Positions 9,403-56,984 of a DNA stretch of 56,984 nucleotides are shown in pieces (positions within the stretch are counted from its first letter, which is position 1; the number at the start of each line of letters is the position of its first letter). Made by a program: the position numbers and the translations under genes. The stretch lies in assembly GCA_000388065.2 (NCBI GenBank), contig KB932203.1; one strand, given 5' to 3'. Source of the stretch: Fonticula alba ATCC 38817. Taxonomy: Eukaryota > Protista > Nucleariida. The notes below the pieces were generated by a model. That model saw nothing but the letters and a program-made list of their open reading frames with translations. It was not told where the DNA came from and did not search any database.

Positions 9403-12400
9403 AGGGGGGATGGCAAGAAGGAAGGTGGCCCGGCCGCACATACCGGCTACCGGTGTGGGCGGGGCATTCAACCCCCCTGGCAGGCTGTCCGCCAGGGCAA
9501 GAAGCTCCCCGTACATCAGTCCATCGGTCGCGATCCACGCCTCGAGTAGCATGAGTGTCAGCGAGAGGTGGTCCTGACCGTGCGTGTGGGTTTTTTTTTT
9601 CCGCCGTGAAGGTGCGTGAGAGTGAGGACGGAGCCAGGACGACGGTCAGAAGAACATGCGTGGGCAGGCGGGGCGGCTGGGAGCAGGACGGATGCGCACC
9701 GAGGCCCGGAAGTCCCCTGCGCCGATCAGCTTGCTGATCGAGGCCAGCAGGAGCACGCGCTGCGCCCGGGTCCGGAATAGATGGCCCAGCAGCGGGTCCA
9801 ACACACTGTCCACCGGCTGGAGGCGCGCGCTCCGGGACCTGCGAGATCCCACACAGCCTGCAGGGCGCGAGAAGGGCGGGCATGGGGCGCCGATGTCCGG
9901 GTGTCAGCGCACAGACACATAGTGGCAGGCTGTAAGGCTCCGGGGACGCACCAATGGGGAAGGAGGCGCCCTGAATGGAGCGCTGCAGGCGCCAGATCAG
10001 CGGCAGGGCCACCCGGACGGATGATGGCGCCGCCGAAGCGAGGGCCGGCAGGGACAGCAGTTCCAACGCCCGGGCCGCAATGTCCGGCCGGTGGTCGGTG
10101 AGCAGGGCCACCAGCACCGGCAGCAGCTGGAAGCCCCACGGGGGGGGAGGGGGGGGTGAGTGGATGTGAGGAGGGCACGGAGAGGCGCCGGAGCGCAGGC
10201 ATGCACTGGCCATTTCCGCGCGAAGGCGCACCTCTGTCGTCGGGAGAAGCTGGCGTGCGGCCAGGTGGTCGACAATCCAGAAGCTCATGGGACGCAGGGG
10301 CTCCGCCAGGAGGCATCCCTGGAGGGCCGGCGTGGCCAGGTGCGCAACGGCCCATGACAGGAAGAAGCTGTCCATGCACGCGTGGACCCGGGGCCGGGGC
10401 CGGGGGAGGGAGGGAGGTCAGGGGGCGGGCGGGCGGGCATATGTAAACAACCAACAAGGAACGGGCGCAAGGAAGGGAAGAGGGAAAGGCAGAGAGGCTG
10501 TTCCGCACCCGGGCTCTGCTCTCGCCGGTGTTACATGTGGCCCGTGAAGGGTGCATGGGAGTCAGGAGGAGGTGTTAAAAGCAGGAGTCGATGCCAGACG
10601 CACATGCGCGCGCCTGCATGCCCCCCCCCCCTCCTGTGCTTCACTTGCGAACGGGGTGCCTGACGTACTAGCGCCATAGTTGGCCAGGAGATCCTCGTTC
10701 GTCGGGCGCCGGGGGCCGGCCGGCGAGGCAGCCGCCGTCGCCGCCGCCGCCGCCGCCGCCTCGACCGCGCGTAAGTCATGCTCGAGAAGGTCGCGCGTGG
10801 CTCGCAGGGCAGTCAGCTGGACCCCGGCCGGCGCGGCGCCCGAGAGTGCCCGGCCGAAAAGACCCTGCAGGGCCGGATGGTTGAGGAAGCGCGGCAGACG
10901 CTCCCCCGCCAGGGCACTGGCCCGGAGGAGGGTGTCCCACAGGGTGCCGCGCGGCCCGGCGGCCAGGGCCTCGGTTTGGACCATCTCGGCCGCGGCATAT
11001 ATCACATGTACCAGCATGCCGGCCGGACTGCCGGCAAAATGCCGCGCCAGGACCGAGTCCCCCGGGAGGGCGCCGTCCGGCGCATCGGCCGGCCGGGCCA
11101 ACAGCGCCAGGATCAAAATCCCCCGGCAGGCCCGGGGTAGGTGCTCCGGTGTGAAGACACCGGCCGGGACCGGCGGCGCCGCGGCGCCCGCCGGCCGCGG
11201 GGCCGACAGAGGGCCTGCGGCAGCTGACAAACGGAGGGGACGCTGCTTCGGCGTGGTGCCCGCCGCGACCGGGGGCTGGCCGGGATCCGGGAACAGGTTG
11301 GCTACACCCGAGGCCGACATGGCGGGGTACGGGCGGGCGGGCGGGCGGACGAGCGGGCGGGCGGGCGGGCGGGCGGATAATGCATTGCCAGGTGTCAGTC
11401 ACAGGTCGGCAGGCCCGGCGCACGGGGCGGCCATCCCAAAACGTGGCCAGGGCTGGTGCGTGCCTTCACAGTAGGCCAGTAGATGCCCGACGGCTTGGGA
11501 AGAGCGCCGGCCTCGGGCCAGACTCAGCACGGCCGGCACGGCCGACGCGACGACCTGCATGCCGGAAAGCACCGGCGGCCGGGCGGTGTTGCGGGTGTCA
11601 GATCAGGACGTCACACGGGTCACAGCAGGGACAGGGCGCCAGGACCCGAGGAGAGGGGAGGGGGGGGGGGACGCACATCCGGCGGGCCGGTCACCGCGGC
11701 CACCTGCAGGGCGAGCAGGGTCTGCTCGAAGCCGGGAGGCTGGCGCAGGGCCAGCCCCGGGCTCGCCAGGCGGATGGAGTCAGCCAGGACGGCGAGGGCG
11801 TGGCCCGCGTGAGTTGGCCCGGCCGGCGCACGCAGCCGGGCCAGCAGGGTGGCCAGCATGGGCAGGCGCTGGTGCAGCAGCCCCGGGTGCGTGCGCAGCC
11901 AGGCGCCCAGGAAATGCGCCACGCCGGCCAGCGGCGGCCCGGCTGGATGCTGGCCAGGCTCCGACTTCATGCTGGCCGGGTCCGCGGGAAGCTGGCGCCA
12001 CAGCGCCTCGAAGGACGCCTCGGCCAGGAGCTCCGAGCACCGGGCCAGATGCCGGGACTGCCGGGCAGCCGGATCGTCCATGTCATCGGTCTCCCCGGCG
12101 CCGAGGGCCGCCAGGCGGCTGTCGTCATCCTCATCGCCATCCTCCTGCGCCTCCTCGCCGGCGACATCATCGGTCAGGGGGTCTGGGAGCCGCCGGGCGG
12201 TGGCCGCCGGCGGAGCACACTCGCGGCAAGTGTCGCGCCTGGCCGCGGCCCAGGGATTCAGATGCGCGCCTTCGACCGTGGCATGGCCGGTGCACCGGAC
12301 GCACGGGACGGCTGGCCCGTGCAGCACGGCCGACAGCCCGGCGTGAGCCCGGCCGAGAGCCATCATCAGGAATTGCGAGAAGGCGCCATGCAGCGACGCC

Positions 12401-50580: not shown

Positions 50581-53019
50581 ATGTCTGCCGACACCCTAGC
50601 CCTCTCTGAGCTTCAGCTCCACTCCATCAACCTTGATGAGAGTACGTCATCCTCGTCCCCTCGCTGCTGGGGGGCTCCTCCATCGCTCGCCTGGCTGGCC
50701 GCCCGCCTTCCGCCCGCTTCTCACCCCTCCCTCCCTCCCTCCCCTCTGCCACAGAGTTCCAGAATGTTGTTGTCATCTACAACACCCCGGTCGTGACCCA
50801 GGAGAAGTATGACCGCCTGATGCAGATCATCACCCTGAAGGTCCTCAGCAACATCGACTACATCAAGGGCACCCTGGAGATGCCCAAGACCTATGTCGAT
50901 GGCAGCACCGAGGAGTTCACCACCAAGGGCTTCTGCTTCGTGGCCTTCGACAACGCCGACAAGGCGGCCGACGCCGTGAAGAAGCTCGATGGCACCGCCT
51001 TCTCGGCCACCATCACCTTCTCGGCCATCCTCATGAGCGACGTGCCCAAGTACGCCAACCTGCCGGACGAGTTTGTTCCGCCCGAGATCTACCCCCTGAT
51101 CCCGAACGTGCGTCCGTTGCTGGCATCGCTGCCACCATGTATTTTTCTTTGTCTCTCTCTCTCTCTCTCCCCCCCCCTCCCCCCTCTGCCTGCCAGGGAG
51201 CGAGCTGCCATCCTTCTGTTTCCCCTTTTGTTGTTTCCCCCTTCCTCCCTTGGCTTACCTCTTCCTTCCGCCACTGTCCCCTTGTCGCTTGCTCCCCTCC
51301 TCTCGCCCCGGTCTCTGCCATGTGTGTGCCCGCCCGCAGGAGGAGAAGCGCAGCTGGCTGCTCGACTCCCGCCACCGCGACCAGTACGCCGTGCACTTCG
51401 ACGAGATCAACTCCATCCGCGTCTGCTGGGCCGGCGAGGAGCCGGAGCAGTGCGCCTTCCGTAACGTACGTCCCGTGCCTGCGCCCCGCCCCGCCCCGCA
51501 CCCCCCCCCTGCTCTCGGCCCCACCTCCGTCCCCATCGACTGACCCTGTCCCCCTCCCCCTCCTCCGGCCCCTCTTTCCTCGCCATAGAACTGGGTCGAC
51601 AGTGAGTTCAAGTGGTCCTCCAAGGGTACCTACCTTGGCACCGGTCACTCTCAGGGTGTGGCCCTGTGGTGTGGCAGCAACTGGACTCGTTTCCGCTACG
51701 CCCACCCGAAGATTTATGGCTTCGAGTTCTCGCCCAACGACAACTACCTGGTCACCTATTCCTTCGAGTCGATCATCATCTGGGAGTGCTCCACCGGCGA
51801 GGCCCTGCGCACCTTCACCCCCTCGGCCACCGGGTCGACCAATGTCCTGCGCTTCTCGCACGATGACCGCTACGTTGCCCGGGCCACCAGCGCCGGCCTG
51901 CAGATCTACGAGATCGCCAACAACGAGATCACCCTCCTCAACAAGAAGATCTACACGGTCGACCGCCTGGCCGACTTTGCCTGGTCGCCCACCGATAACA
52001 TGCTGGCCTACTGGGTGCCGGAGTCCGGCAACAGCCCGGCCTGCGTGAGCCTGCTGAATGTCCCCCGGCTGACTGTGGCCCGTACCAAGAGCCTGTTCAA
52101 TGTGTCGCACTGTGTGCTGGTTTGGCACCCGGATGGTGACTTCCTGGCCGTGCGCATCGACCGTTCCGGCAAGGTTGCCCTCAAGATCGCCGCCAACATC
52201 GAGGTCTTCTTCATTCGCGAGCGTCAGATCCCGGTCGAGTCGCTGGAGATCCCGGACAATGTGGTCAACTTCGCCTGGGAGCCCAAGGGGTCGCGCTTTG
52301 TCCTGGTCCGCGGTGTGGCCACCTACACCATCGACATTTACAATGTCGATGCCAAGGCTCGGACCTCCATTCAGAAGCTCAAGTCCCTGGAGCGCAAGTC
52401 CCACCGGTCCATCTCCTGGTCCCCGCGCGGGCAGTTTGTGGTGTTCGGCTCGCTGCGCATCATGCCGACCGAGAGTGCCCCGGGCACTTTCGAGATTTGG
52501 AACACCCACGATCTGGAGCTGGTGCACAACTCCTCCCACGACCAGGCCTCGCACCTTCTGTGGGACCCCAGCGGCCGGTACTTCGCTTCGGTGGTGTCCA
52601 TCCGCGATGGCAGCAACTCCGAGAACGGCTTCCGCATCTATGACTTCAAGGGCAAGATCCTGCACTCCGAGAAGCACTCCATGGTTCACCGGTTTGCTTG
52701 GCGCCCGCGCCCGGCCAGCCTGCTGAACGAGGAGCAGCGCGCCGGTGTCATGAAGAACATGCGCAAGTTCGCCCAGGAGTTCCGCCGCCAGGACGAGGCC
52801 CGCGGCTCGCGCGCCAAGACCGAGCTCCTCACCCGCCGCTACAACAGCCTGGTCGAGTGGAACCGCTTCCGCGAGGCGGCCATCGCCCGCAGCGAGGAGG
52901 ACCACGACCGCCGTGTTGCCCTGCTCGGCTTCGACCCGAGCCAGGTCCAGGAGGCCCCGGTCACCGTCCAGATGGAGTTCATCATCGAGGAGCGCACCAC
53001 CGTTCTGCCGAAGAACTAA
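50581..53019 (+). CDS. EIF3B: Translation initiation factor eIF3 subunit b (Prt1): RRM plus beta-propeller, multi-exon
   Basis: VVVIYNTPVVTQEKYDRL, TKGFCFVAF (RNP1), SWLLDSRHRDQY, WSSKGTYL, FSPNDNYLVTYS, LWDPSGRYF, ENGFRIYDFKGK and FAWRPRPASLL. Confidence 0.9.
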
Positions 53020-53784
53020 GAGGACTCCGTTTGCGTGCGCATATACTACATATCCATATATGTGTGTGTGTGTGTGCGCGCGCGCGTGCGAGAGGGCGCG
53101 ATTTCACGGTGCGCCGCCGGTGGCAGAGAGGCGGCCCCAGTACGGTGGGGTTTCCCCTTCCTTGTCTCTTTCCCGCCGTGTTCCGAGGCAATTCCTTCGG
53201 CCTGACGCGAGAGGGCGCGAGAAGAGTGGTCCAGGGTCGCCGGGCGCGCGCTTTCCTCCCGGCCTGTGCTGTGTCTCCCTCTTTGTGCCTCCATGTCCTT
53301 CTGTCTCTCCTCGCCCTCCCCTGCCCCACCTCCAAGGCGCCGTGTTTTCTTTGCCAAAAAAAATACACCCACAAACGCAAAGCACCCCTTCTCTTCCCTT
53401 TCTTTTGTGTTTTTCCGCGCTGGCGTTCCCCCCCCCCCCCCCCTGCATCCTTGGCCCTGCCTTTCCCCCGCACCCGGGCCTGTGTAACCTCCCCTCTGCC
53501 CGGGGAGGGGGTGCGGCGCTCGTGAGCATGTGGGAGTCAAGGTAGTGTATTGTATGTTGCATTCGTATGTGTATGTGTGAGAGGGAGAGGGAGAGAGAAA
53601 GGGAGGGTGAGAGGTGGGAGTGTGGGGGGAACGGGCTGGCAGAAGCGAGCCCGGCCGGGCCGGACACGCCGACACACGTGCGTGCACACATGCAAAGGAC
53701 AAAAAAGAAGGAGAAAGGGCACGCGCGGGCGCGGAAAGGCCGGGCCCCGTTGCAGGGGCGGCGACGGCGCCGTGAGGCCTCCTC

Positions 53785-56700
53785 TCAGCGCTTCCGGGGG
53801 GATCGCTTGGCGCGGGGGCCGCCGGGATGCCTCTTGCCGCGGCCGGCACCCCCCCGGGGGGAGCTGCTGCCACTGTTACTACCGCTGCCACTCCCAGGCG
53901 AGGCGAGGGGGGAGCCAGAATTTGAAGGGGGGCTCGCGGGCGTGGGCGCTGGAGCGGCCACCTGCTGCTGCTGCTGCTGCTGCATGAGCTGGCTGATGGG
54001 CTGGCTCAGGACCACGGTGGAGGTGCAGCCCGGGCCGCCGGCCTCCGGAGACAGGTCATCGCCACTGTCGCCGTCACTCGGACTGGCGGCGTCGCTGCTG
54101 TTGTCATTGTCAGCCACAGGGGGGGCCCCGGCGGCGCCCAGGCCCAGCGGGCTGCGCCGGGCCGGAGGCGACTCCAGGTCGATGCGGAGCTGGCTAATGG
54201 GCTTGGTCAGGACCACGGTGGAGGCGAAGCCCGGGGCGCCGGCGCCGCTGGGCAGACCATCCTCGCTGTCACTGCCACTGGGAGTGGGGAGGTTGTCACT
54301 GCCGCTGTCGGCGCCGGGCGAAGTTCCGGCGGGGCCCAGGCTAAGCGGGCTGCGCCGGGTCGTCGGCGTCCGCGACTCGGCGCGCAGCAATTGCGACAGG
54401 GGCTTGGTCAGGACCACGGTCGAGTCAAAGCCAGCCGGCCGGCCGGCCGCACCCGTATCCATCGACGCGGCGCCCTCATCATCGCTGGAGCTGAAGGGAT
54501 TGTCCTCGGCGTCATCTTCCTCATCGGCGGTCGAGCCGTCCGACGGCAGGGGCCGGGGCCGGGGCCCGGGCCCGCCACCCGGCGGCCGGATCGGCGAGTG
54601 CGTCATCACCACGGTCGACATCCGGGCCACCAGGAAATCATCGTCACTCTGATCGCTGGCATCCGAGTCGGTGTGCACCAATGACGAGGCATCCGTGATG
54701 GAGGGCATCACCGGGGCGGCGGCCAGGCGCCCGGCAGGGGATGAGGGCCCTCCTCCAGAGGGCGCCAGGCCAGGGAAGCGTGGCCGGTTGAAGTTGACCG
54801 TCGAGCCGAAGATGGCCGCCGTATTCCGGGTTTGCTGGCCGTCACTCTCGAAGCTGTTGGAGTTGCTGCTGCTCCTGCTGCTGCTGCTGCTGTTGGTGTG
54901 ATTGTTGCTGCCGCTGGCAAGGGGGGCACCCATGAAGGCGGGACTGCTGGCGCCGGCGCCGGCAGCGACGCCACCACTTCCAGCGAGCATGTCCTTCAGC
55001 GGTGGGCGGTTGAAAACGATGGTGGCGCCGAAGTTGGCACGCCCGGCTGGCCCGCTGGCGGTTCCGCCCTCATCGTCGCCGCTGTCGGAGAAGGCATCCC
55101 CATCGGAGGACCCGAAGGACGATGAGTGGCCGGCGTCTCGATCGAAGGCCGAGTTGCCGACATCATGCGGGTCTTCCTCCCCGCCCTCGGGCCCGAGCCC
55201 GGGATGGGTGTCATCCTCGCTATCCTCGCCCGGCTGCGGGGGGTTCAAAATGTCCAAGGCCATGCGCTTAACCAGCACCGACTTGTCATGCTGCGCCAGA
55301 TGCTGAATGATGCTGAGCATCTCCGCATCGCGCTGGATGAAGCCATGCACCCCGGCCGTGGGGGCCAGCTCGCCGCGGGCCACCAACGGCAAGGTGGCCG
55401 ATGCCAGCGAGGTCAAGATCTTCATGACCGACACGCGGACCTGGGCCTTGGGGACGAATGTCCGGCCCGGCTGGAAGGCCTTGCGCGCCAGGCCCCGCAG
55501 GAAGGCCGGCGAGAGGGCCAATGACCGGCGGACACCGGCCGCCAACATGACCACACGCTCGAAGCGGTCCAACAACCGCTCCAGCAGGGAATTCGCCGTG
55601 ACCCGGGTACACATGATGGCCACCAGGCAGGCAATGTGCTCTTCCTCCGAGAGGACCAGCTCCACGCGCTCGGTGTCCTCGGACAGCCAATCGGAAATGG
55701 CCTCCAGGGCGGCCATCTGCGTGTAGTCCAGATCCCGGTGGACCTGGGCCACGGCAGTTTGGCCGCGAGCCGCGCCCACCGCCGCCCCGGCGCTGGTGCT
55801 GCCGGCCGCCAGCTCCAGCAGCACCGCCAGGGCATCCTCCTTCCAGAGCATGTCCCGAGTGGCGGCCCCGGCCAGCGGCAAGACCACCAACACCGCCAGG
55901 GCCAAGTTCCGGATGGCCGACGCCCGGGCCAGTCGGGCCTGCAGACAACTCGTCAGGTGGGGAATGATGCCGGCCTCCGCGGCGGCAGCCTGCCGTGCGC
56001 GCGACAGACGGCACAGTCCAAAGAGGGCGGCCATGGCCTGGTGGCGAATCTCCGACACGTAATTCGAGGGGCCCCGCTGGGAAACCACGGCCTCATACTC
56101 GGTGGGGTAGAGGTCCAGCACCCGGACCAGGGTGGCAATGGCCCCGGCGCGTTCGAGGGCATCCTGGACATTGATGTCGGCCAGGGTGCGGACCATCTTC
56201 ACGCACTTGAGCAGCGCCGCACAGACGGCTGCATAGTGGGCATTGGTGCCGGTGGCGGCGGCCGCCCCGGTGCCATGGCCATCGGTCGCCAGAGGACCGA
56301 GCCCGGCATTCCCCGGCGATCCGGGCTCCTGTGCCTGAATATAATCGCAATGAGCATTCAGCTCCCCAAGCAGCACCAGCAGGACCGGCGCATTGCCGGC
56401 GCGCTTGGCCTGCTCCAGCAGCTGGCGCAGCCCGGCCGAGTCCAGGGTGGTCAGGGCCGCGGTGTTGCTCTGGAAGGCCGAGGCCGAGGAAACCGTCGAG
56501 GCGATCATGGCATCGCGCAGCTGAATCAGCGTCGTCAGCAGGTCCAGCACCAGCTCATAGTACTGGGGCAGGCGAGTGGCCACGGCGGCCAGAAGGTCGG
56601 CATCCGGCTGCTCATCGTCCAGCGTCACCCCGGCATCCAGGAGCAACTGCCGCTCGCTGGCCGCCGCATTTTCCTGGCGCATGGCCGGCAGCAGGGCCAC

Positions 56701-56940
56701 CAGCGACTGGATGAGCCCCTGGCTGCCGAACACTCGGCTGAGCTGGTTCTTGTTGATGGACATGGTGCCATCCTGCGGCCGGGGAGCCGACACACCATGG
56801 CTACCGGTGTGGTCCATCATGTACTTGATGCAGTCCAGCACCAGGAGGACGCGCTCGCGCGCCAGCAGCGCGCTCGGAGCCCCATACTTGGGCCAGTCGA
56901 GCATCTGCACAAGAGCCGCGGTACCGCGGCAAGAGATGAA
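53785..56940 (-). CDS. 3' exon (partial gene) of a SepH/Cdc7/MAP3K-epsilon-type SIN/MEN kinase: ARM-like C-terminal region plus a repetitive acidic tail. The kinase domain presumably lies outside the window.
   Basis: Acceptor gcgtag at 56941 opens FISCRGTAALVQML. AAAAEAGIIPHL, RDMLWKEDAL, ALEAISDWLSEDTERVE and SVLVKRMALDIL match recalled motifs FIACRGIPVLV, QAAENGIIPHL and VLVKQMATSLL of this family. Confidence 0.78.
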   Translation of the reverse strand, partial: FISCRGTAALVQMLDWPKYGAPSALLARERVLLVLDCIKYMMDHTGSHGVSAPRPQDGTMSINKNQLSRVFGSQGLIQSLVALLPAMRQENAAASERQLLLDAGVTLDDEQPDADLLAAVATRLPQYYELVLDLLTTLIQLRDAMIASTVSSASAFQSNTAALTTLDSAGLRQLLEQAKRAGNAPVLLVLLGELNAHCDYIQAQEPGSPGNAGLGPLATDGHGTGAAAATGTNAHYAAVCAALLKCVKMVRTLADINVQDALERAGAIATLVRVLDLYPTEYEAVVSQRGPSNYVSEIRHQAMAALFGLCRLSRARQAAAAEAGIIPHLTSCLQARLARASAIRNLALAVLVVLPLAGAATRDMLWKEDALAVLLELAAGSTSAGAAVGAARGQTAVAQVHRDLDYTQMAALEAISDWLSEDTERVELVLSEEEHIACLVAIMCTRVTANSLLERLLDRFERVVMLAAGVRRSLALSPAFLRGLARKAFQPGRTFVPKAQVRVSVMKILTSLASATLPLVARGELAPTAGVHGFIQRDAEMLSIIQHLAQHDKSVLVKRMALDILNPPQPGEDSEDDTHPGLGPEGGEEDPHDVGNSAFDRDAGHSSSFGSSDGDAFSDSGDDEGGTASGPAGRANFGATIVFNRPPLKDMLAGSGGVAAGAGASSPAFMGAPLASGSNNHTNSSSSSRSSSNSNSFESDGQQTRNTAAIFGSTVNFNRPRFPGLAPSGGGPSSPAGRLAAAPVMPSITDASSLVHTDSDASDQSDDDFLVARMSTVVMTHSPIRPPGGGPGPRPRPLPSDGSTADEEDDAEDNPFSSSDDEGAASMDTGAAGRPAGFDSTVVLTKPLSQLLRAESRTPTTRRSPLSLGPAGTSPGADSGSDNLPTPSGSDSEDGLPSGAGAPGFASTVVLTKPISQLRIDLESPPARRSPLGLGAAGAPPVADNDNSSDAASPSDGDSGDDLSPEAGGPGCTSTVVLSQPISQLMQQQQQQQVAAPAPTPASPPSNSGSPLASPGSGSGSNSGSSSPRGGAGRGKRHPGGPRAKRSPRKR
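54000..54430 (-). repeat. Three copies of the STVVLxxP motif at exact 201-nt (67-aa) spacing within the kinase tail
   Basis: ggaccacggt occurs at 54009-54018, 54210-54219 and 54411-54420, giving FDSTVVLTKPLSQL, FASTVVLTKPISQL and CTSTVVLSQPISQL. Confidence 0.85.
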
Positions 56941-56984
56941 CTACGCCACCGTGTGTGAGCCGACAGGGCGGGGGGAGGGGGGGG

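Follow-up and report, generated by a model that had tools for sequence, protein, structure and literature searches.

The terminal exon of a SepH-type kinase gene

The DNA analysed here, which we call the window, is a stretch of 56,984 nucleotides from contig KB932203.1 of Fonticula alba ATCC 38817, and its minus strand carries, at 53785-56939, the last exon of H696_02197 (P0001, 1793 aa), a kinase of the SepH/Cdc7/Cdc15 type. Beyond the conserved ARM-repeat domain this exon encodes a long tail in which a short motif built around a threonine recurs six times, as an initial annotation made from the sequence had pointed out. The motif array is real and lies far beyond chance expectation, and we tentatively favour its interpretation as a set of docking sites that would depend on phosphothreonine (pThr).

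The exon contributes the C-terminal 1051 codons of the gene and its stop codon (53785-53787), and it matches P0001 residues 743-1793 at 100%. Within it, a minus-strand open reading frame at 53785-56910 encodes a conserved helical region that runs uninterrupted into the long low-complexity tail; in a protein search its product and H696_02197 were 100% identical across the C-terminal 1039 residues. The acceptor splice site of the exon, 56940/56939, was confirmed by an RNA contig.

The part of the ARM-repeat domain that lies in the window (55246-56939, minus strand) ends at VLVKRMALDIL. Searched exhaustively with phmmer, the ARM region gave 339 family matches, 132 of them at E<=1e-10, and the named ones include 'Cytokinesis protein sepH' and 'cdc15'. 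When the ARM domain and tail were modelled together with AlphaFold2, the ARM domain emerged as a confident all-helical solenoid (predicted local distance difference test score, pLDDT, mostly 80-98), and the best eight Foldseek matches of this ARM model in Swiss-Prot were three SepH proteins, Dictyostelium SepA, three MAP3K-epsilon proteins and S. pombe Cdc7, with E values from 9e-15 to 7e-11. Pfam gave no significant match to the exon product. The upstream exons, which we retrieved, encode an STE-group kinase domain with HRD, DFG and APE motifs; the middle of this kinase domain is 62-68% identical to family kinases, and the nearest PDB kinases to the kinase fragment belong to the STE20 group. 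The closest relatives are found in Glomeromycota, Mortierellomycota, chytrids, Ceratiomyxa, Anaeramoeba and Mantamonas. The assignment to the SepH/Cdc7 type, first made from the window, is thus borne out by ARM sequence, ARM fold and kinase exons alike, and H696_02197 is confirmed as a member of the Cdc15/Cdc7/SepH/SepA/MAP3K-epsilon family, with its ARM domain and a kinase domain whose G-loop is unassembled.

The annotated gene model begins within the kinase C-lobe (Pfam PF00069, positions 173-263), and it lacks the kinase N-lobe because of gaps in the assembly. Scaffold KB932203.1 (L001:6908-15265) has N-gaps in H696_02197, one of which abuts the end of the window at 56984, and the G-loop and VAIK region of the kinase are absent from the assembly altogether. 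A 558-nt contig lying between N-gaps (L001 12719-13276) carries the middle of the kinase, approximately residues 65-181, with the motifs HRDIKGANIL, DFG and SPYW, and it has been placed downstream of the C-lobe exon (9980-10249), an order that is probably a scaffolding misplacement. At window position 56089 the RNA contigs of both samples have C and the assembly has G, a synonymous change in the Ala codon for P0001 residue 1026 (GCC>GCG) that reflects a difference between strains or else a mistake in the assembly.

A threonine motif array in the C-terminal tail

The tail (53788-55245, minus strand) consists of 486 aa following VLVKRMALDIL, of which 82 are Ser, 66 Gly, 58 Pro, 53 Ala and 42 Asp; the initial annotation had described about 480 aa rich in Ser, Asp and Gly, and both its length and its character hold good, with Pro and Ala added to the abundant residues. 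Its GC content at third codon positions is 0.82 in the annotated frame, a value in keeping with coding sequence; the ARM part has 0.86, and the other frames of the tail have 0.64-0.66. A single 3770-nt RNA contig spans 53532-56940 with no gap and extends for 361 nt more into the upstream exons; across the RNA contigs this extension beyond 56940 ranges from 361 to 1190 nt. Because this gapless contig reaches spliced upstream exons, the tail must be present in the mature mRNA with no internal intron, and the concern that it might lie outside the mature message, raised when the motifs were first described, falls away. The RNA runs that supplied the contigs (X1 and X2) were judged to be genuine RNA because their contigs hold GT..AG-spliced joints in a neighbouring gene (51107>51340 and 51465>51589). 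Contigs from both runs start at 53532, giving a 3' untranslated region of about 250 nt (53532-53784, minus strand). Two further runs (X12 and X13) bear a different organism label and have essentially zero reads, making them uninformative. Minor RNA joints at 54449>54544 and 54570>56247 were considered as introns and rejected: their ends are non-canonical and their sides only 21 letters long, and we treated them as cross-matches from other loci. The tail is predicted to be intrinsically disordered, since in the AlphaFold2 model its entire length has a pLDDT of about 30 and forms no strands, the sole bump being a poly-Gln helix.

The motifs all lie on the minus strand and are numbered here from the ARM domain outwards. 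Motif 1, NFGATIVFNRP, occupies 55003-55035 (Thr codon 55023-55021) and motif 2, IFGSTVNFNRP, occupies 54781-54813 (Thr codon 54801-54799); they are followed by motif 3, ARMSTVVMTHSP, at 54592-54627 (Thr codon 54615-54613). Motif 4, GFDSTVVLTKP, lies at 54400-54432 (Thr codon 54420-54418) and continues into LSQLL, motif 5, GFASTVVLTKP, lies at 54199-54231 (Thr codon 54219-54217) and continues into ISQL, and motif 6, GCTSTVVLSQP, lies at 53998-54030 (Thr codon 54018-54016) and continues into ISQLM and a poly-Gln run. In the full protein the six threonines are residues 1382, 1456, 1518, 1583, 1650 and 1717, and the distances from one to the next are 74, 62, 65, 67 and 67 aa. These six strings, the starts of their Thr codons and their spacings are exactly those given in the initial annotation, whose count of six is correct for the tail and too low for the full protein: a seventh full copy, FIGATVRFSRPP, is found off the window in the linker between the kinase and ARM domains (Thr 503; P0001 residues 496-512). 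Two degenerate look-alikes, SGDTVRLGPG and STPLVLSLPG, also lie off the window, at P0001 residues 228-240 and approximately 540-552.

The copies conform to a consensus F-x-[S/A]-T-[V/I]-x-[F/L/M]-x-[K/R/H/Q]-P. The tail has six matches to the core pattern [AS]T[IV].[FLM], whereas 200,000 shuffled versions of it averaged 0.03 matches and never had more than two. The longer pattern [AS]T[IV].[FLM][NTS][RKHQ] has six occurrences in the six reading frames of the window and all of them are within the tail. Threonine is invariant in all seven copies despite the presence of 82 serines in the tail, and V or I invariably occupies +1, as F, L or M does +3. Of the tail's six hydrophobic islands, five come directly after a Thr, and the flanks of the motifs are acidic and Ser-rich, resembling in this respect the linker of the MST kinases.

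Motifs 4, 5 and 6 are the ends of three units of 201 nt (67 aa) that follow one another in exact register at 53965-54567 (minus strand). Each unit passes from a basic, Pro-containing patch through an acidic Ser/Asp stretch to the Thr motif, and then to P-[IL]-S-Q-L. The units had been called an exact 201-nt tandem triplication; their register is indeed exact, but their sequences have diverged, with ungapped DNA identities of 45-57% and gapped protein identities of 52% for units 5 and 6, 37% for units 4 and 5, and 31% for units 4 and 6. Tandem Repeats Finder, run on 53000-56984, reported no 201-nt array and nothing other than a 29-nt trinucleotide run, and together with the low DNA identity this led us to reject a recent tandem DNA repeat. 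The sequences instead indicate that units 4-6 are an old, diverged tandem duplication. Units 1-3 resemble the other units in little except the motif. The motif has been kept while the spacers have dropped to 17-37% identity (52% in the youngest pair), and the retention of a motif amid an old and diverged duplication argues for selection on it; judged from these patterns of divergence, the array is probably under selection.

Some 40 aa before their Thr motifs, units 5 and 6 share a second element, [TA]RRSPL[SG]LG, which is a basic Ser-Pro site (54268-54291 and 54067-54090, minus strand); its counterpart in unit 4 is the weaker PRPRPLPS.

The tail is not a family feature, most relatives stopping within about 10 aa of the end of the ARM domain, and we looked for the motif pattern in the ARM-domain relatives and found none that carry the F. 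alba form. No nucleariid orthologue of H696_02197 could be identified among the named ARM matches, and a search of the ESM Atlas with the tail gave best scores of 0.68 or less, which is noise level. A simpler pattern, T-[VILM]-[KR]-[VILMF], is present in the kinase-ARM linkers of 14 of 85 family proteins, compared with 3.8 +/- 1.9 after shuffling, an enrichment of approximately 3.7-fold. This enrichment is specific to threonine and is absent when the first position is S, A, G, D, E, N, P or K. In many fungal members of the family a conserved element, TL[KQ]LxT[RK]LSNxSW, lies about 35 aa before the ARM domain. We considered the derivation of the tail motif from this element and dropped the claim, a position matrix built from it having scored no F. 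alba copy above threshold.

The neighbouring gene mentioned above lies on the plus strand, and its GT..AG introns at 51108-51339 and 51466-51588 were confirmed by RNA contigs. Its called product has a precomputed Pfam match to eIF2A, and its transcript depth exceeds that of the kinase gene about fourfold. The intergenic and 3' untranslated stretch at 53050-53620 has many CA/TG and CT/GA dinucleotide runs, and the read contigs break at these repeats.

Possible readers of the motif

The combination of an invariant Thr, V or I at +1, F, L or M at +3 and acidic, Ser-rich flanks points to a pThr-dependent docking motif, and the occurrence of Thr alone in seven of seven copies, together with the Thr-specific enrichment in the linkers of the family, favours a role for this residue as a phospho-acceptor. 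The alternation of hydrophobic residues at +1 and +3 would suit an extended strand that presents the phosphorylated threonine. We therefore prefer, at a level of confidence a little short of even, the view that the tail motifs form a pThr-dependent docking array, whatever its reader may be. In such a scheme a kinase of the mitotic-exit/septation pathway would have gained a lineage-specific disordered tail by repeated duplication of a unit of about 65 aa, in which the short motif was kept as the spacers drifted. The invariant threonines would be phosphorylated by the kinase itself or by another kinase of the STE20 group, and a pThr-specific reader would bind the modified residue and the hydrophobic strand that follows it. 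In this way the array would gather the downstream Mob1-Warts/Dbf2 module, or else a regulator, at the kinase.

Several considerations weigh against this scheme. Beta strands also favour threonine on structural grounds alone. At +2, two of the seven copies have N or R, a weaker arrangement for MOB1. The tail is without detectable relatives, a search with it having matched only H696_02197 itself, and no argument can be made from conservation across species; word-indexed protein searches are nearly blind with an Ala/Ser-rich protein such as this (2, 2 and 1 matches), making the self-match of the tail weak evidence of absence. Finally, the Mob1 docking sites of budding yeast are on Nud1, where they are phosphorylated by Cdc15, rather than on Cdc15 (PMC7822594), a point of background that the initial annotation had right.

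Mob1 is the single best candidate for the reader of the array, albeit one that, taken on its own, we hold to be rather unlikely. Human MOB1 prefers pThr with hydrophobic residues from +1 to +3 (PMC5461540) and binds pThr motifs by strand augmentation, the ligand being added as a further beta strand (PMC5461540; PMC4511216). The MOB1 consensus is satisfied in full by five of the six tail motifs (TIVF, TVVM and three instances of TVVL), while TVNF and the TVRF of the linker agree with it only at +1 and +3. In human MOB1 the basic pocket that would take the pThr is marked by K153, R154 and R157. MST1 and MST2, which belong to the STE20 group, have a preference for Thr with a hydrophobic residue at +1. 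In MST2, Mob1 docks on autophosphorylated TM motifs, of which there are seven, four of them functional (PMC4511216), in keeping with what had been said of MST1/2 when the array was first noted. F. alba is listed as having one Mats, one Warts and no Hippo (PMC7035326 Table S1). There is a precedent for a Cdc7-like kinase contacting Mob1 directly: MAP3K-epsilon1/2 of Arabidopsis, which belong to this family, bind MOB1A/B in yeast two-hybrid, co-immunoprecipitation and luciferase complementation assays (PMC8910673).

An FHA domain might serve as reader in place of Mob1, belonging either to an SLMAP/Csc1-type subunit of a STRIPAK/SIP PP2A complex or to another FHA protein, and its binding might switch the kinase off or localise it; we see this as unlikely. 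FHA domains classically require pThr with a hydrophobic residue at +3. With a strict Thr and F, L or M at +3, all seven copies comply with this pT-x-x-hydrophobic rule at least as well as they do with the preferences of MOB1. There is precedent in the FHA domain of SLMAP, which binds the autophosphorylated linker of MST2 (PMC5663475). Csc1, the SLMAP orthologue of S. pombe, has an FHA domain that targets the SIN-inhibitory PP2A complex (SIN, septation initiation network) and whose loss leads to symmetric localisation of Cdc7, but the cue that this FHA domain recognises is independent of the SIN and is something other than Cdc7 (PMC11321038). Moreover, the +3 rule on its own leaves the conserved residues at +1 (V/I) and -3 (F) unexplained.

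The motif might also act without phosphorylation, as a hydrophobic strand that adds by beta-augmentation to the groove of the kinase's own ARM domain, with an autoinhibitory effect, or to a scaffold at the spindle pole or associated with a GTPase; Thr would then have been kept solely for its strand propensity. Extended peptides are common ligands of ARM-repeat proteins, the C-terminal region of Cdc15 is reportedly autoinhibitory, the alternation typical of an amphipathic strand is seen in the hydrophobic residues at -3, +1 and +3, and the linkers of the family are themselves enriched in a T-phi-[KR]-phi pattern (phi, hydrophobic), as described above. Set against this are the identity of the central residue, which is Thr in seven of seven copies and never Ser, Val or Ile, and the fact that the enrichment in the linkers is confined to Thr. 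The AlphaFold2 model of ARM domain plus tail docks none of the tail copies on the ARM domain, forms no strand from them and keeps their pLDDT near 30, although this is weak negative evidence. We doubt, on balance, that a phosphorylation-independent strand accounts for the array.

It is less probable still that the array has no function and that the motif is a hitch-hiking remnant of a unit duplicated in the course of neutral low-complexity expansion. In its favour, the databases show the tail in no species other than F. alba, the protein is rich in low-complexity insertions, and units 4-6 are clearly duplicates. Yet units 1-3 and the linker copy retain the motif although all other similarity has gone, and the motifs account for almost all of the tail's hydrophobic residues. 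Recruitment of a Polo kinase, which acts upstream of Cdc15/Cdc7, through phosphorylated S-pT cores is very improbable: the Polo-box domain requires an S-pT core and Ser does precede Thr in five of the seven copies, and the Polo kinase Cdc5 helps to activate Cdc15, but two copies have Ala at -1, none has Pro at +1, and the conserved residues from +1 to +3 and at -3 would be left without an explanation. Other motif classes, weighed by sequence alone against their general definitions, were rejected: a SUMO-interaction motif has the wrong basic/Pro flank and would not need the Thr, the LC8 TQT and 14-3-3 motifs do not match, and the basic residue at -2 of the PP1 RVxF motif is absent.

Comparison with mitotic-exit, septation and Hippo kinases

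On the fungal side of the opisthokonts, F. alba holds a basal position. In the mitotic exit network, the SIN and the Hippo pathway, the manner in which the upstream kinase captures Mob1-NDR/LATS differs by lineage: in yeasts the phosphosites belong to a scaffold, in animals to a linker of the kinase that is autophosphorylated. If pThr-dependent docking is the correct reading of the tail, a Cdc15-type kinase with a docking array of its own would represent an intermediate or a convergent solution, and the array would offer a simple test, at the level of peptides, of how docking logic evolved. Should the reader be an FHA protein of a STRIPAK complex, PP2A control would be linked directly to a Cdc7-type kinase; should there be no reader, the tail would be one more lineage-specific disordered extension. 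In its most specific form the proposal is that a Cdc15/SepH-type kinase, in an organism reported to lack canonical Hippo, evolved a built-in multivalent pThr array convergently by duplication of a linker motif, and that the array recruits Mob1-Warts directly, replacing the Nud1/Cdc11 scaffold and taking the role of the MST1/2 linker. We put this forward as a speculative possibility that is more likely to be wrong than right by a wide measure.

Within its own family the F. alba protein shares the kinase-linker-ARM architecture of the Cdc15, Cdc7, SepH, SepA and MAP3K-epsilon kinases; the canonical members stop at or near the ARM domain, whereas the 486-aa tail with its six motifs is particular to F. 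alba. A kinase of this family would be expected to act under a Tem1/Spg1 GTPase, at the spindle pole or the centrosome, and to activate Mob1-Dbf2/Sid2. The SepH-like kinases of Mortierellomycota (P0008, P0016 and P0020) also have long acidic tails of 600-700 aa after the ARM domain, with conserved hydrophobic islands (DEPRTV[KR]MV.R and ESM[IV][LM]R..LP[KR]IRLEL[LF]D), some of them of a T/S-hydrophobic kind. Their motifs differ from those of F. alba and are aperiodic, and the tails have no detectable homology to the F. alba tail. Independent tails with islands of their own imply that post-ARM extensions bearing short motifs arose more than once in this kinase family.

The linker of MST1/2 is among the closest parallels: there, too, several redundant Thr-hydrophobic motifs are found in a disordered, acidic and Ser-rich region of an STE-group kinase. 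MST1/2 are GCK-II kinases with a SARAH domain, however, whereas the F. alba protein is a Cdc15/SepH kinase with an ARM domain; the MST1/2 motifs are 7-15 aa apart with M at +1, while those of F. alba are about 65 aa apart with V or I at +1. Except for the single linker copy, the F. alba array follows the ARM domain; it has no sequence homology to the MST1/2 linker, and its docking function is a prediction. We rejected common descent with the MST/Hippo linker, the F. alba kinase being a member of the SepH/Cdc7 family and its tail having neither a homologue nor a Pfam match, and for these reasons any likeness to the MST linker would be convergent. With the Nud1/Cdc11 scaffold the array would share its proposed role, the phosphorylation-dependent recruitment of Mob1-Dbf2/Warts beside the upstream kinase; Nud1 is a separate protein of the spindle pole body, whereas the sites proposed in F. 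alba would be built into the kinase itself.

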